Shown piece by piece: positions 15,701-46,618 of a stretch of DNA of 64,000 bases. A program made the position numbers and the translations under genes. Every line of letters begins with the position of its first letter. Position 1 is the stretch's first letter. The notes beneath the pieces were generated by a model. That model made no database searches. It had not been told where the DNA came from and saw only the letters and a list, made by a program, of their open reading frames with translations. Origin of the DNA: Macrostomum lignano (Eukaryota); assembly GCA_002269645.1 (NCBI GenBank), contig NIVC01000628.1:310001-374000 (forward strand), given 5' to 3'.

Positions 15701-18700
15701 CAGATTGGTGTTGAATGTGACAGATTGGTGTTGAATGTGACAGATTGGTGTTGAATGTGACAGATTGGTGTTGAATGTGACAGATTGGTATTGAATGTGA
15801 TAGACTGGTATTGAATGTTACAGATTGATATTGAATGTTACAGATTGTTATTGAATGTTACAGATTGGTATTGAATGTGACGGATTAGTATTGAATGTTA
15901 CAGATTGGTATTGAATGTGACAGATTTGTAGTATTGAATGTGACAGATTAATAGTATTAAATGTGACAGATTTGTAGTATTGAATGTGACAGATTGGTAG
16001 TATTGAATGTGACAGATTAGTATTGAATGTTACAGATTGGTATTGAATATGACAGATTTGTAGTATTGAATGTGACAGATTAATAGTATTGAATGTGACA
16101 GATTAATAGTATTGAATGTGACAGATTGGTAGTATTGAATGCGACAGATTTGTAGTATTGAATGTTACAGATTGGTTGTATTGAATGTGACAAAATGATA
16201 TTTTAAATGCAAAACATCCAAACGCTCCCAACCGCAGGTGAAGGACAAAATGATCGCCACACTGAAGAAAGGCAACGGCAGCGAAGGTGGCAACGGTGGC
16301 GGCGGCCTCCCAGACGCTGCTGATGCCGCCGTAGGCAGTTCAGTAGCTGAACTGTCTGCCGAAGTTGACGCCCTTCGACAGGAGCGCGAACTGCTGCGCG
16401 AAGAGGCCCAGCGAGCTAAACTAGCCGCCGAAGGCCTTCGCTGCGATGTTGAAGATCTCGAAGCTCAGATGCAGTCGGAGAGCGAAACCTTTCGCAAGAC
16501 AATGTCGGGATTGGAGGCTCAGCTGGAGTCTGAGAGGCTGGCCAGGCTGGCTGCGGAAGAGGAGGCCCAGGTTTGACTTGCTTTACTCTTGTGCTTGTGA
16601 TTCACTCTGGCATGATTAGCTGTCATGTCACACTAACATGATTAGCTGTCATGTCACACTAACATGATTAGCTGTCATGTCACACTAACATGATTAGCTG
16701 TCATGTCACACTAACATGATTAGCTGTCATGTCACACTAACATGATTAGCTGTCATGTCACACTAACATGATTAGCTGTCATGTCACACTAACATGATTA
16801 GCTGTCATGTCACACTAACATGATTAGCTGTCATGTCACACTAACATGATTAGCTGTCATGTCACACTAACATGATTAGCTGTCATGTCACACTAACATG
16901 ATTAGCTGTCATGTCACACTAACATGATTAGCTGTCATGTCACACTAACATGATTAGCTGTCATGTCACACTAACATGATTAGCTGTCATGTCACACTAA
17001 CATGATTAGCTGTCATGTCACACTAACATGATTAGCTGTCATGTCACACTAACATGATTAGCTGTCATGTCACACTAACATGATTAGCTGTCATGTCACA
17101 CTAACATGATTAGCTGTCGTGTCACACTAACATAATTAGCTGTCGTGTCACACTGACATGATTTGCTGTGATGTCACCAACATGATTGGCTGCCATGTTT
17201 GCCATGACATGATTGGCTGTGATGTCACCAACATGATTGGCTGCCACATTGCCATCACATGATTTGCTGTGATGTCACCAACATGATTGGCTGCCATGTT
17301 TGCCATGACATGATTGGCTGTGATGTCACCAACATGATTGGCTGCCACATTGCCATGACATGATTTGCTGTGATGTCACCAACATGATTGGCTGCCATGT
17401 TTGCCATGACATGATTGGCTATTCCCCTCCCCACTACAGGCGGCCAGACGCGAGGCCAGCCAGCAGCGGGATCTGTGGCTTCGCGACAAATCCGAGCTCA
17501 GCCAACGCCTCGCCCAAGCCGAGGCCGAGCTTGACGCGCTAAGGCGCCAATCGGCGCCCCAGTTGCTCCGGTCTGGTGCTGGCACTTCTGTCGCATCAGG
17601 CGGTCAGGATGGCGGCGAATTAGAAGCCAGAATTCGATCGCTAACGGAGAGTCTGATCCAGGTGAGCGGTTAGAACTGCAGTAAGGGCTATCTAGGCTCA
17701 AACTAGGGCCTGTGGGATGATGTTGTCGACGATACTACACTATATAATCTGTGACTTCCATTGGTTGGCCAATCGTAATTTAGACTCAAATTAAATACTT
17801 TTTTTAACCCCGATACTCCAATCTGAGCAGAAGCAGACGGCTCTGGAGTCGAGCAACGCCGAGAAGGCCAGTCTCAGACTGATGGTGGAGCAGCTGGAGT
17901 CTCGCCTATCCGAACGGACCCATCACGCCACGTCGCTTGCCCAGGAGTCGGGCCTGTCGTCCAGATCTTCGCAGGCGCCCCAGTCTGATTATATCCGCAT
18001 TCACATGCAGGATCCGCCCTATGCAAGGTTTGTTGGGTGATGCTGCGATCTAAACAGTTGTCCATTGATCTAAGCAGCTGTCTATTATTGATCTAAATAG
18101 CAGTCTATTATTGATCTAAACGGCTGTCTATTATTGATCTAAAAAGCTGTCTATTATTGATCTAAACATCTGTCCATTGATCTGAACAGCTGTCCATTGA
18201 TCTAAGCAGTTGTCCATTGATCTAAACAGTTGTCAATTGATCTAAACAGTTGTCCATTGATCTAAACAGCTGTCCATTGATCTAAGCAGTTGTCCATTGA
18301 TCTAAACATCTGTCCATTGATCTGAACAGCTGTCCATTGATCTAAGCAGTTGTCCATTGATCTAAACATCTGTCCATTGATCTAAACAGCTTTCCATTGA
18401 TCTAAACAGTTGTCCATTGATCTAAACATCTGTCCATTGATCTAAACAGCTGTATATTGATCTAAACATCTGTCCATTGATCTAAACAGCTGTCCATTAA
18501 TCTAAACATCTTTCCATTGATCTAAGCAGTTGTCCATTGATCTAAACATCTGTCCATTGATCTAAACAGCAGTCTATTATTGATCTAAACAGCTGTCTAT
18601 TACTAATCTAACCAGCTGTCTATTATTGATCTAAACATCTGTCCATTGATCTAAACAGTTGTCCATTGATCTAAACATCTGTCCATTGATCTAAACAGCA

Positions 18701-44900: not shown

Positions 44901-46618
44901 TAGATGGACACACACTGAGTATATATCGACACAAACTGAGGATATAAGGACACACTGATCTATAGAAATCTGCTAGTTCGACAATCCTGTTAATTACATG
45001 CACGAGTAATGATTAAAACAAAGGCCATTATTTGTAGCGTAGCATCTCATTCATTTCGAGACCACAGTACACAGCTACCCAGCGGGGGATGAGAGCAAGC
45101 CTAGAAGCACTGTCTAGTTATTCAGCTCATACAGTTGAGTCGCCTGTCTTTCTCCGTGACCTTATATTAATTAATTACTCATCAGGATGAAGAATGTGGT
45201 CTTGCAGGACTGCGAAGACAGACAGACAGACAGACAGACAGACAGACAGACAGACAGACAGACAGACAGACAGACAGACAGACAGACAGACAGACTGACA
45301 GACAGACAGACAGACAGACACACAGACAGACAGACAGACAGACAGACAGACAGACACACAGACAGACAGACAGACAGACAGACAGACAGACAGACAGACA
45401 GACAGACAGACAGACAGACAGACAGACAGACAGACAGACAGACAGACAGACAGACAGACAGACAGACAGACAGACAGACAGACAGACAGACAGACAGACA
45501 GACAGACAGACAGACAGACAGACAGACAGACAGACAGACAGACAGACAGACAGACAGACAGACAGACAGACAGACAGGCAGACAGACAGATCCAGCGGCA
45601 GTGCGGACAGCCCGAGCGCAGCATCCGGCCACCTGTCACTCTTTCGGCCAGCCCCTCCCCAGTCATCCTCCCTTATCTTTTTATCCGCTTCATATTTTCG
45701 ATAATATTAAAAGCCGAAAAATATTGTCTGCGGTGGGCTTGCGGTTTATTTATACATTTGACGCTTGGCTGAGGAGTTTCGCAGCGCCGTTAGAGGGATT
45801 TTATCTGATTGCAATAAAAAAATCCTCAGTTGTTTCATCCCTGCTGAATGGGAAAAAACGCTTTGAAATTTAAAACCAAATTTAAATCCTCTCTGTTGGA
45901 TTGGAGTAGCGCGTGATTATTTTTTGCGATGAGGGGCTCGGGAAGCTGTGTTTTGCGCTTATTAAAGAGTGAAAAATAAATATTCTGACTTTTACGCACT
46001 GAATGTGCACTTGCTCTTGGGATTACAGGAATATGACAGTTTTAAACAAAAGCCAATATTTTTGTTAGTTTACGAAGCAATTTGACAGCGATGCAGAATT
46101 TGATGGGTTGAAAATTTGAGATATTCTACGAGTGTGTGCAGGTTAGGGTTCTGGTAGACTTTCTAGCCCACCAGCTCCTCTCAGTAGAGCCTACCAGCTC
46201 CTCTCAGTAGAGCCTACCAGCTCCTCTCAGTAGAGCCTACCAGCTCCTCTCAGTAGAGCCTACCAGCTCCTCTCAGTAGAGCCTACCAGCTCCTTTCAGT
46301 AGAGCCTACCAGCTCCTCTCAGTAGAGCCTACCAGCTCCTCTCAGTAGAGCCTACCAGCTCCCTTCAGTAGAGCCTACCAGCTCCTCTCAGTAGAGCCTA
46401 CCAGCTCCCTTCAGTAGAGCCTACCAGCTCCTCTCAGTAGAGCCTATCAGCTCCCTTCAGTAGAGCCTACCAGCTCCTCTCAGTAGAGCCTACCAGCTCC
46501 CCGCCTATTTGAGCCTCACAGTACATTACAACTCAAAGTAGCAACCTAAATTCCATCGATAAAGCATCTCAATCTTTCTAATTACAGAATCAGTATTAAT
46601 CCTCAGTTCTGTAACAAA

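Follow-up and report, generated by a model that had tools for sequence, protein, structure and literature searches.

A probable recent 15.4-kb tandem duplication whose junction joins two unrelated minisatellite arrays in Macrostomum lignano

RESULTS

A 15.4-kb segment of scaffold NIVC01000628.1 in the Macrostomum lignano DV1 assembly Mlig_3_7 is present as two adjacent copies, A and B. We consider it likely that this is a real and recent tandem duplication, which arose by joining with microhomology or a templated insertion, or by template switching, between non-identical chromosomes. Of the three DV1 subgenomes, one is likely to carry the duplication, which is also likely to be recent on an evolutionary scale. 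The window analyzed comprised 64,000 nucleotides (~310 to 374 kb of the scaffold), and its features are listed in Table 1.

Self-BLAST of the window returned a direct repeat in which positions 15747 to 25188 match positions 31198 to 40743 (98.4% over 9.55 kb), and the repeat continues collinearly from 25188/40743 to 31193 in copy A and to 46491-46500 in copy B, with a period of 15,451 bp between the copies. The copies lie head to tail; apart from the one novel junction between them, the flanks are collinear, as in a tandem segmental duplication. A 20-mer across the junction (AGCCTCTCAGGTGTTGAATG, 31189 to 31208) occurs once in the window, with a chance expectation of 0 even when 2 mismatches are allowed. 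The direct repeat and the once-only 20-mer bear out the 15.4-kb tandem duplication described in an earlier note on this DNA, all factual statements of which hold.

Table 1. Positions, within the window, of the duplicated copies, the junction, the minisatellite arrays, the mosaic segments, and the genes
Feature	Position	Strand	Remarks
GOLGA5 (golgin-84) exons 1-3	12712..15447	+	Exons 12712-13566, 14468-14698, 15250-15447; single-copy; PAA79568.1, 755 aa
Full 20-bp array, GOLGA5 intron 3	15492..16192	+	
Copy A, including 4-nt filler	15747..31197	+	15,451 bp
GOLGA5 exons 4-7, copy A	16235..20490	+	Exons 16235-16570, 17437-17661, 17828-18028, 20230-20487
C2H2 zinc-finger gene, copy A	21904..26134	+	Exons 21904-22440, 23326-23901, 25235-26131; PAA79569.1, 654 aa
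Ancestry switch in copy A	26713..27494	.	From B-identical to homeologue-like; includes 19-bp array 26938-27519
Copy A tail	27520..31193	+	0.17-0.29% from L002/L003; 1.0% and 39 indels from copy B tail
23-bp array of copy A	30798..31193	+	Unit AGCCTACCAGCTCCTCTCAGTAG; ended by the junction
Novel junction	31189..31208	.	AGCCT-CTCA-GGTGTTGAATG; 4-nt filler at 31194-31197
Copy B	31198..46491	+	15,294 bp; unique right flank from about 46501
Partial 20-bp array opening copy B	31198..31643	+	Distal 446 bp of the array; 1 mismatch to 15747-16192 over its length
GOLGA5 exons 4-7, copy B	31686..36030	+	CDS same as copy A; 5'-truncated, without exons 1-3 or promoter
C2H2 zinc-finger gene, copy B	37444..41924	+	CDS same as copy A
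Copy B tail	43110..46491	+	Private to this scaffold; 1.5-1.6% from L002/L003
23-bp array of copy B	46165..46500	+	Complete; continues into right flank; variant-unit map unlike copy A

The 15.4-kb unit contains GOLGA5 exons 4 to 7, which code for the Golgin_A5 domain and the C-terminal membrane anchor, together with a complete C2H2 zinc-finger gene. The duplicated part of GOLGA5 corresponds to amino acids 421 to 755 (335 of 755, or 44%), and all three coding exons of the zinc-finger gene lie inside the unit; the doubling of a zinc-finger gene and half of GOLGA5 had therefore been described correctly. Exons 1 to 3 upstream, together with copy A, make up an intact GOLGA5 gene. As a result, GOLGA5 is present once in intact form and once as a promoterless fragment (exons 4 to 7), and the zinc-finger gene is present as two identical copies. 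The GenBank zinc-finger model PAA79569.1 is stitched over copies A and B, and the joining of both copies in this model is flagged here as an annotation error. No open reading frame of at least 20 aa runs across the junction because the arrays are rich in stop codons, and Rfam and tRNA scans of the duplicated region returned no matches.

At the junction, the 23-bp array on the left is joined to the middle of the GOLGA5 intron-3 20-bp array on the right. The left breakpoint, between exons 3 and 4, lies about 255 bp into the 20-bp array, and its position is ambiguous by 1 to 3 units because it falls within a run of four identical units. The order of variant units is the same in both 20-bp stretches but for one base. 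Between the 23-bp and 20-bp units the best local score was 4, compared with a mean of 6 for shuffled units, indicating that there is no similarity and agreeing with the earlier statement that the units have no real homology. Since the join is non-homologous, homologous unequal crossover between the arrays is excluded. NAHR between the breakpoint repeats might have been suggested by the location of both breakpoints in tandem arrays and by the common-core arrays elsewhere in the unit, but its probability is negligible; the units are dissimilar, the join carries a 4-nt insertion, and the junction sequence, which lacks extended identity at the breakpoints, refutes it.

The 4-nt filler looks templated from the adjacent repeat. 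Its context, CCT+CTCA+G (an 8-nt match), equals CCTCTCAG located 11 nt upstream, and the match inside the 23-bp unit that had been pointed out before was thus recovered. An equally good local template exists for 8 of the 256 possible 4-nt fillers (3.1%; P about 0.03), for an insertion that is shorter than 5 nt and lies inside a repeat. An equally valid reading is that the last 23-bp unit underwent a 10-nt slip flanked by CCT and that the join then formed on 1-nt (G) microhomology. In either form the microhomology, 0 to 1 nt (G) at the final join and 3 nt (CCT) at the slip, is of the few-nucleotide kind found in TMEJ and alt-EJ. The repair pathway is read here from one junction, and a 4-nt insertion falls below the 5 nt needed for confident template assignment (PMC7368036).

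Array sequence makes up 60% of the unit and 55% of the locus; for two breakpoints placed at random, the chance that both land in arrays is therefore about one in three. Enrichment of breakpoints in arrays was accordingly rejected as evidence, as the arrays already span 55 to 60% of the locus. Folded as single-stranded DNA, neither array did better than shuffled sequence on either strand (z = -0.37 to +2.4), and on this result structure-based fragility of the arrays was rejected as well. Arrays with a common core also occur elsewhere in the unit. The earlier note proposed replication slippage or template switching at fragile repeats. The non-homologous join and the templated-looking filler in this proposal are supported; the fragility part is unsupported, given the 60% array coverage of the unit and the unexceptional folding.

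Two homeologous scaffolds of the same assembly, NIVC01001797.1 and NIVC01000767.1, carry the locus as a single, collinear copy without the junction (loci L002 and L003). Both retain the unduplicated arrangement, in which exons 3 and 4 flank the 20-bp array and the 23-bp array continues directly into the right flank, and the junction 20-mer was not found in either locus. These single-copy loci, and the mosaic ancestry of the copies described below, are absent from the earlier note.

Over the first ~11 kb, copies A and B differ by 2 to 3 mismatches (0.02%) and a few repeat-unit indels, among them whole-unit indels of 26, 20, 43, and 238 bp, whereas over the last ~3.7 kb they differ by 1.0% and 39 indels. 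The divergence of the copies is thus at the haplotype or subgenome level in the 3' tail and not in the 5' 11 kb. Copy A changes from B-identical to homeologue-like sequence in or beside a 19-bp array, the variant units and 3' boundary of which are shared with L003 only. Further along, the 23-bp array of copy A has the variant-unit map of L002 and L003, unlike that of copy B, and array-length changes of up to 273 bp separate the copy A tail from both homeologues. Within unique sequence, 23 substitutions and 9 indels are private to the copy B tail. The left flank, the copy A 5' block, copy B, and the right flank together represent a single haplotype that is distinct from L002 and L003, and for each half of the unit the assembly contains four distinguishable sequences. 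This mosaic ancestry is directly relevant to the mechanism. Immediately before the junction, 3.7 kb are of another haplotype, and at the junction there is a 10-nt out-of-register step. Since the copy A tail differs by 0.17 to 0.29% from the homeologues, compared with 0.02% between the 5' blocks, the assembled homeologues were not its recent template; recent conversion of the tail from the present L002 or L003 is disfavored by this ~10-fold greater number of differences and by the array-length changes of up to 273 bp.

The earlier note had named a haplotype-joining assembly artefact as the main alternative, and it still has to be weighed, although we regard it as unlikely. According to this explanation, the locus is single-copy everywhere, the contig strings together two haplotype or subgenome versions or uses the same reads twice, and the junction is a chimeric read or a consensus error. 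Mlig_3_7 is indeed redundant (180 to 312 Mb duplicated), with S/L-chimeric scaffolds making up 36% of its length (PMC10733133); a switch of this kind is present in copy A and falls inside an array. The near-identical 5' blocks (2 to 3 mismatches in ~11 kb) resemble what under-collapsed reads of one locus would give after Pilon polishing, and the identical-5'/divergent-3' mosaic would also be expected of two alleles that are partly identical by descent; the DV1 line, however, is reported to have three inbred, essentially homozygous subgenomes with negligible heterozygosity within each (PMC10733133), and the whole-unit array differences between the 5' blocks are atypical of consensus noise. Both breakpoints fall in arrays, where contigs tend to end, but there is no gap between the copies, gaps being a primary mark of false duplications (PMC9516828). 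The window contains no N, and the join therefore lies inside a Canu contig; joins made by SSPACE in Mlig_3_7 carry gaps (710 joins, 1.58 Mb of N). Moreover, the two sides of the join have no sequence in common, so that an overlap-based join is impossible. Canu trims chimeric reads that lack spanning support, which likewise counts against an artefact. We estimate that a random ligation chimera of the same locus, 15 kb apart and in direct orientation, would have an a priori probability of about 1e-4, and a filler that looks templated from the adjacent unit is more like biology. We infer that reads spanning the junction underlie the contig.

Gene models of the older ML2 assembly were also considered. 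Two of them, P0004 and P0008, have their start precisely at GOLGA5 exon 4 and carry the window haplotype, which may lend weak support to a real second copy, and among ML2 zinc-finger models the window haplotype stands to the others at about 8 to 4, a faint hint in the same direction. ML2 and Mlig_3_7 share one PacBio data source.

It is also conceivable, but decidedly improbable, that the junction is real and its context partly misassembled. The true sequence upstream of the copy A tail would then be homeologue-like as well, window-haplotype reads having been substituted in the first 11 kb, and chromosomes of two different subgenomes would have undergone an unequal non-homologous exchange, unless the rearrangement was more complex. 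The switch lies in or beside the 19-bp array (26713 to 27494), where an assembler is likely to change haplotype, Mlig_3_7 has many chimeric scaffolds, and the copy A 19-bp array matches L003 only in its variant units and 3' boundary. Junction-spanning reads of ~10 kb would nevertheless be expected to pass this array and so constrain the layout, and the explanation requires more distinct chromosomes than the three reported inbred subgenomes. Furthermore, both flanks, the copy A 5' block, and copy B share one haplotype that is neither L002 nor L003.

DISCUSSION

For the favored explanation, a real tandem duplication, the order of events that we infer would begin with a DNA end within the 23-bp array, downstream of the zinc-finger gene. 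With no guiding homology, this end would have been joined to the GOLGA5 intron-3 20-bp array, 15.4 kb "behind," on a sister or homologous chromosome that was misaligned. Before this, the end may have slipped or primed out of register in its own array, adding CTCA(G) from the CCT microhomology, and final sealing would have taken place on 0 to 1 nt of microhomology. Such a signature would be that of polymerase-theta-type end joining or of microhomology-mediated template switching (FoSTeS/MMBIR). Given a divergent tail behind a near-identical first 11 kb, one of three routes to the mosaic would apply: the partners may have been non-identical chromosomes with a common first 11 kb, the copying strand may have used the homologue as its template for the tail stretch, or the tail of copy A may have been converted later.

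In a bolder version, to which we assign a low probability, one replicative repair event in a neopolyploid would account for all of this. A fork broken on one subgenome chromosome would have invaded a homologous or homeologous chromosome at the 19-bp array and copied about 3.7 to 4.4 kb. It would have left this template within the 23-bp array and, after a slip of 10 nt, primed again on the original chromosome, 15 kb behind and with no homology. If this were true, the locus would be direct sequence evidence that template switching between subgenomes makes gene copies, and it would point to the minisatellite-saturated introns of M. lignano as preferred switch points.

Polymerase-theta-dependent tandem duplications in Caenorhabditis elegans are mostly 10 to 20 kb long, with templated insertions as a hallmark (PMC7368036). 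The duplications formed by TMEJ in C. elegans brc-1/brd-1, helq-1, and tnsl-1 mutants (PMC7368036, PMC8654963, PMC13031629) resemble the M. lignano duplication in their head-to-tail form with a single novel junction, in the 10- to 20-kb size class, in the 0- to 1-nt microhomology, and in a short insertion that looks copied from junction-adjacent sequence. The M. lignano event differs in being germline-fixed in a wild-type background, where any dependence on polymerase theta is putative, in having an insertion of only 4 nt, and in having copies that differ partly in haplotype, which sister-chromatid events would not produce. With the non-recurrent copy number variants ascribed to FoSTeS/MMBIR (Hastings et al. 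2009, PMC2621351) it shares non-recurrent breakpoints, a junction with microhomology and an insertion, and possible signs of more than one template switch, namely, the 10-nt array slip and possibly the homologue-copied stretch. However, M. lignano shows one rearrangement junction with no inverted or triplicated segments, and ordinary recombination or gene conversion would explain its haplotype switch equally well.

False (heterotype) duplications (Ko et al. 2022, PMC9516828) are similar in having adjacent copies within an assembly that is redundant, the genome being heterozygous or polyploid, in a haplotype-level difference over part of the unit, and in the distorted GenBank annotation. In M. 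lignano, by contrast, no gap separates the copies, a specific non-homologous join lies inside a contig, and the unit is mostly near-identical rather than haplotype-divergent. Minisatellite-mediated unequal exchange likewise has its breakpoints within minisatellite arrays, but the M. lignano join is between two unrelated arrays and not between misaligned copies of one; therefore, homology had no part in it.

A tandem duplication with a non-homologous repair scar is an ordinary structural variant, and this one is probably real, with the proof resting on the original reads. If it is an artefact, it is one further case of redundancy in Mlig_3_7. Studies of copy number or knockouts of the two genes in DV1 should reckon with four zinc-finger loci instead of three. 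If real, the duplication would be a useful worked case and a PCR marker for DV1-derived lines, although not conceptually new. It would represent a clean and very young birth of gene copies, a complete zinc-finger gene and a truncated golgin gene, in a recently polyploid flatworm, with the ancestral state kept on two sister subgenomes and the repair scar still readable.

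Structure of the tandem duplication

Two copies of a 15.4-kb unit (copy A and copy B) lie head to tail and directly adjacent, as an earlier note on this DNA had described, and the 20-mer that spans their junction, AGCCTCTCAGGTGTTGAATG, occurs only once in the window. Twelve different tandem arrays make up about 60% of the unit, and the unique spacers between them house every exon. Array density was also very high over window positions 1-58000 (48% of the sequence), with approximately one distinct array per intron or intergenic spacer; the exons there are all confined to short unique spacers. 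Simple and tandem repeats make up 15% of the M. lignano genome (PMC5730564).

To the left of the junction, the 23-bp array of copy A ends at AGCCT and is followed by CTCA and then by GGTGTT. To the right, copy B opens with the distal 446 bp of a 20-bp array, in which the order of variant units is that of positions 15747-16192, with 1 mismatch. The breakpoint in the 20-bp array falls among four identical units in a row, which leaves its position uncertain by 1 to 3 units. A comparison of the units upheld the claim that the two arrays share no real homology. The CTCA filler had been said to match the inside of the 23-bp unit; CCTCTCAG, which reads CCT+CTCA+G, was indeed found 11 nt upstream of the junction, and only 8 of the 256 possible 4-nt fillers reach a local template match of at least 8 nt. 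The scar can equally be worded as a loss of 10 nt, between two CCT triplets, from the last unit, followed by a join on one shared G.

Features of the locus, in window coordinates
Feature	Position	Strand or orientation	Remarks
Copy A	15747-31197	direct, adjacent to copy B	period 15,451 bp
Copy B	31198-46491	direct, adjacent to copy A	period 15,451 bp
RanBP1-domain protein (RanBP3-like)	5477-6472	-	domain match; introns filled with arrays
PP2A B56 regulatory subunit	53609-57706	-	domain match; introns filled with arrays
Truncated GOLGA5 copy	31686-36030		5' part missing
Zinc-finger model PAA79569.1 (BOX15_Mlig004076g2)	21904-41924		spans 20 kb
ATGATGCGGTCCAGTTTC arrays (units of 40, 37 and 41 bp)	23943-25188, 26144-26458, 47962-48402		core inverted in the third
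Copy-B counterparts of two ATGATGCGGTCCAGTTTC arrays	39495-40978, 41934-42248
(TGTC)n	22533-23309 (copy B, 38073-38861)
(AGAC)n	29932-30234 (copy B, 45216-45590)
Array, 32-bp unit	3919-4150
Array, 33-bp unit	4948-5398
tRNA-Val(CAC)-like sequence	7162-7237	+	Rfam (37 bits) and ARAGORN
Uninterrupted 1111-aa ORF	60596-63931	-	putative retrotransposon polyprotein

Genes and other elements of the locus

Exon-sized ORFs in the window match golgin-84/GOLGA5 (Pfam Golgin_A5), C2H2 zinc fingers, a RanBP1 domain, and a PP2A B56 subunit, and the golgin exons match M. lignano proteins at 93 to 100%. GOLGA5 (PAA79568.1) has 755 aa in seven coding exons, and exon mapping of this protein placed the 20-bp array, with the left breakpoint, in intron 3, in agreement with the earlier note. 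The proposed doubling of a zinc-finger gene and part of GOLGA5 was likewise confirmed: the duplicated part of GOLGA5 comprises exons 4 to 7 (aa 421-755, including the Golgin_A5 domain and the membrane anchor), and the downstream zinc-finger gene (654 aa, three exons) is doubled in full together with its 1.4-kb upstream spacer. Copies A and B are identical in all duplicated exons. The duplication has led to an erroneous GenBank annotation, in which model PAA79569.1 combines exons of copy A with those of copy B. The locus of this model in Mlig_3_7, 40 kb of scaffold NIVC01000628.1 (assembly GCA_002269645.1), matches window positions 11904-51924 at 100% identity, which places the window at about 310 to 374 kb of the scaffold.

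In the truncated GOLGA5 copy, an in-frame ATG follows the first four codons of exon 4 (VKDKMIATL...), and the membrane anchor is retained. Given that 39% of M. lignano genes are trans-spliced (PMC5730564), read-through transcripts might in principle allow expression of this copy. Among the models of ML2, an older assembly (P0001-P0014, P0054, P0055), the window's haplotype accounts for at least 8 zinc-finger models and the other two haplotypes together for about 4; P0004 and P0008, both of the window's haplotype, start exactly at GOLGA5 exon 4, and GOLGA5-zinc-finger fusions are frequent.

Several further elements were observed. The 18-nt core ATGATGCGGTCCAGTTTC is common to three arrays, which suggests that some of these minisatellites, if not all, derive from one progenitor. 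The neighboring 32-bp and 33-bp arrays have the 23-nt stretch CACTGATCCTTCAGGAGTCTCTG in common. Because (TGTC)n is the reverse complement of (AGAC)n, each copy contains an imperfect inverted pair of microsatellites separated by about 7 kb. The tRNA-Val(CAC)-like sequence may be either a gene or a tRNA-derived repeat. The 1111-aa ORF, adjoined by an AT-rich stretch (29% GC) at 58 to 60 kb, looks by eye like a Ty3/gypsy-type LTR retrotransposon polyprotein with gag-zinc-knuckle, protease, reverse transcriptase, and integrase parts.

A derived state with mosaic ancestry

The homeologous scaffolds NIVC01001797.1 (L002) and NIVC01000767.1 (L003) of the same assembly each carry the locus once, collinear from GOLGA5 exon 1 past the right flank. 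On each scaffold, exons 3 and 4 flank the 20-bp array, and nothing separates the 23-bp array from the right flank; the junction was looked for in both and was absent. The duplication is therefore a derived state, found on one haplotype only, that of the window (W), to which both flanks also belong.

The two copies do not share one history over their whole length, and this mosaic ancestry, mildly interesting in itself, is the main new finding. In the 5' block, the first 11 kb or so of the unit, 4,622 bp of unique sequence contain no substitution between copies A and B. At 47 substitution sites and 9 indels, A and B agree with each other against L002 and L003; the 5' block holds 44 of these substitutions and every one of the indels. 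In the 3' tail, the last 3.7 kb or so, copy B has 23 private substitutions and 9 private indels, and copy A has only one private site.

Pairwise divergence of the copies and the single-copy loci
Pair	5' block (to about 26.9 kb in A), mismatch	5' block, gap events	3' tail (19-bp array to junction), mismatch	3' tail, gap events
A vs B	2 in 10.7 kb (0.02%)	10, nearly all whole-unit (26, 20, 43, 238 bp)	1.00%	39
A vs L002	2.09%	148	0.17%	18
A vs L003	2.14%	136	0.29%	24
B vs L002			1.54%	45
B vs L003			1.62%	49
L002 vs L003	0.93%	75	0.10%	16

Copy A switches ancestry somewhere from 26713 to 27494, within or next to its 19-bp array, which has its variant units and 3' boundary in common with L003 only; the variant-unit map of the 23-bp array in copy A is that of L002 and L003. 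Despite this likeness, the tail of copy A is a distinct sequence: its 16-bp array measures 964 bp versus about 770 bp, its 21-bp array 397 bp versus 857 bp, and a few sites near its end match copy B. L002 and L003 themselves are closer in the tail (14956-18926 and 16453-20382, respectively) than in the 5' block, with nearly equal array lengths. Local homogenization of the subgenomes, identity by descent, or use of the same reads for both scaffolds in the assembly could explain this.

Assembly artefact or real duplication

The earlier note named a haplotype-joining assembly artefact as the main alternative. A join made by an SSPACE-type scaffolder would carry N, and a contig join requires overlap. 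The window contains no N, so that the join was not made by the scaffolder, and since the arrays at the junction are unrelated, an overlap-based contig join is not possible there. A gap between the copies, a primary mark of false duplications (PMC9516828), was looked for and was likewise absent. Mlig_3_7 was built from PacBio reads of the inbred DV1 line with Canu 1.4, Pilon polishing, and SSPACE scaffolding (PMC5730564). This line has three subgenomes (S, L1, and L2) that are 1.4 to 2.4% apart and has negligible heterozygosity within them (PMC10733133), whereas the assembly holds four distinguishable sequences for each half of the unit, which points to a real extra copy. The route left to an artefact would be an untrimmed chimeric read joining points 15 kb apart, at one locus and in direct orientation, which we judge very improbable. 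Two observations speak against a real duplication: chimerism is common in Mlig_3_7, 36% of which by length lies in scaffolds chimeric between subgenomes (PMC10733133), and copy A contains one haplotype switch. We consider an artefact unlikely, and a real junction within a partly mis-assembled context slightly less likely still. As judged from the assembled sequence, there is a good chance that the tandem duplication is real as assembled.

Mechanism and age of the duplication

Homologous unequal crossover, already disfavored in the earlier note, was excluded because the repeat units at the two breakpoints are unrelated. The junction shows minimal microhomology and a short insertion that looks copied from adjoining sequence, and it would belong to the end-joining or template-switching class. 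In Caenorhabditis elegans, polymerase theta is needed for tandem duplications, mostly of 10 to 20 kb, with microhomology or insertions at their junctions (PMC7368036). The MMBIR model predicts junctions of this type as well (PMC2621351). The further claim that the repeats are fragile was not supported. Arrays occupy 55 to 60% of the locus, two random breakpoints would both fall in arrays about one-third of the time, and the array location of the breakpoints was rejected as a sign of fragility on that ground; unusual single-strand folding was sought in both breakpoint arrays, and none was found.

A simple sister-chromatid event would leave both copies equal in age throughout, and the mosaic therefore constrains the mechanism. 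We favor a model in which the partners would have been two non-identical W-type chromosomes, with a first 11 kb of common descent and with different tails. Alternatively, in one replicative event, the tail may have been copied from a homologue before re-priming behind itself, or the tail of copy A may have been converted later. With the present L002 or L003 as the donor, both alternatives fit poorly because the tail is about 10 times more diverged from these sequences than the 5' blocks are from each other. The duplication, with a divergence of at most 0.03% versus 1 to 2% between subgenomes, is far younger than the subgenome split.

The duplication was described correctly in the earlier note, is probably real, and belongs mechanistically to an ordinary class. 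Its practical use lies in annotation and in the counting of gene copies in M. lignano DV1.
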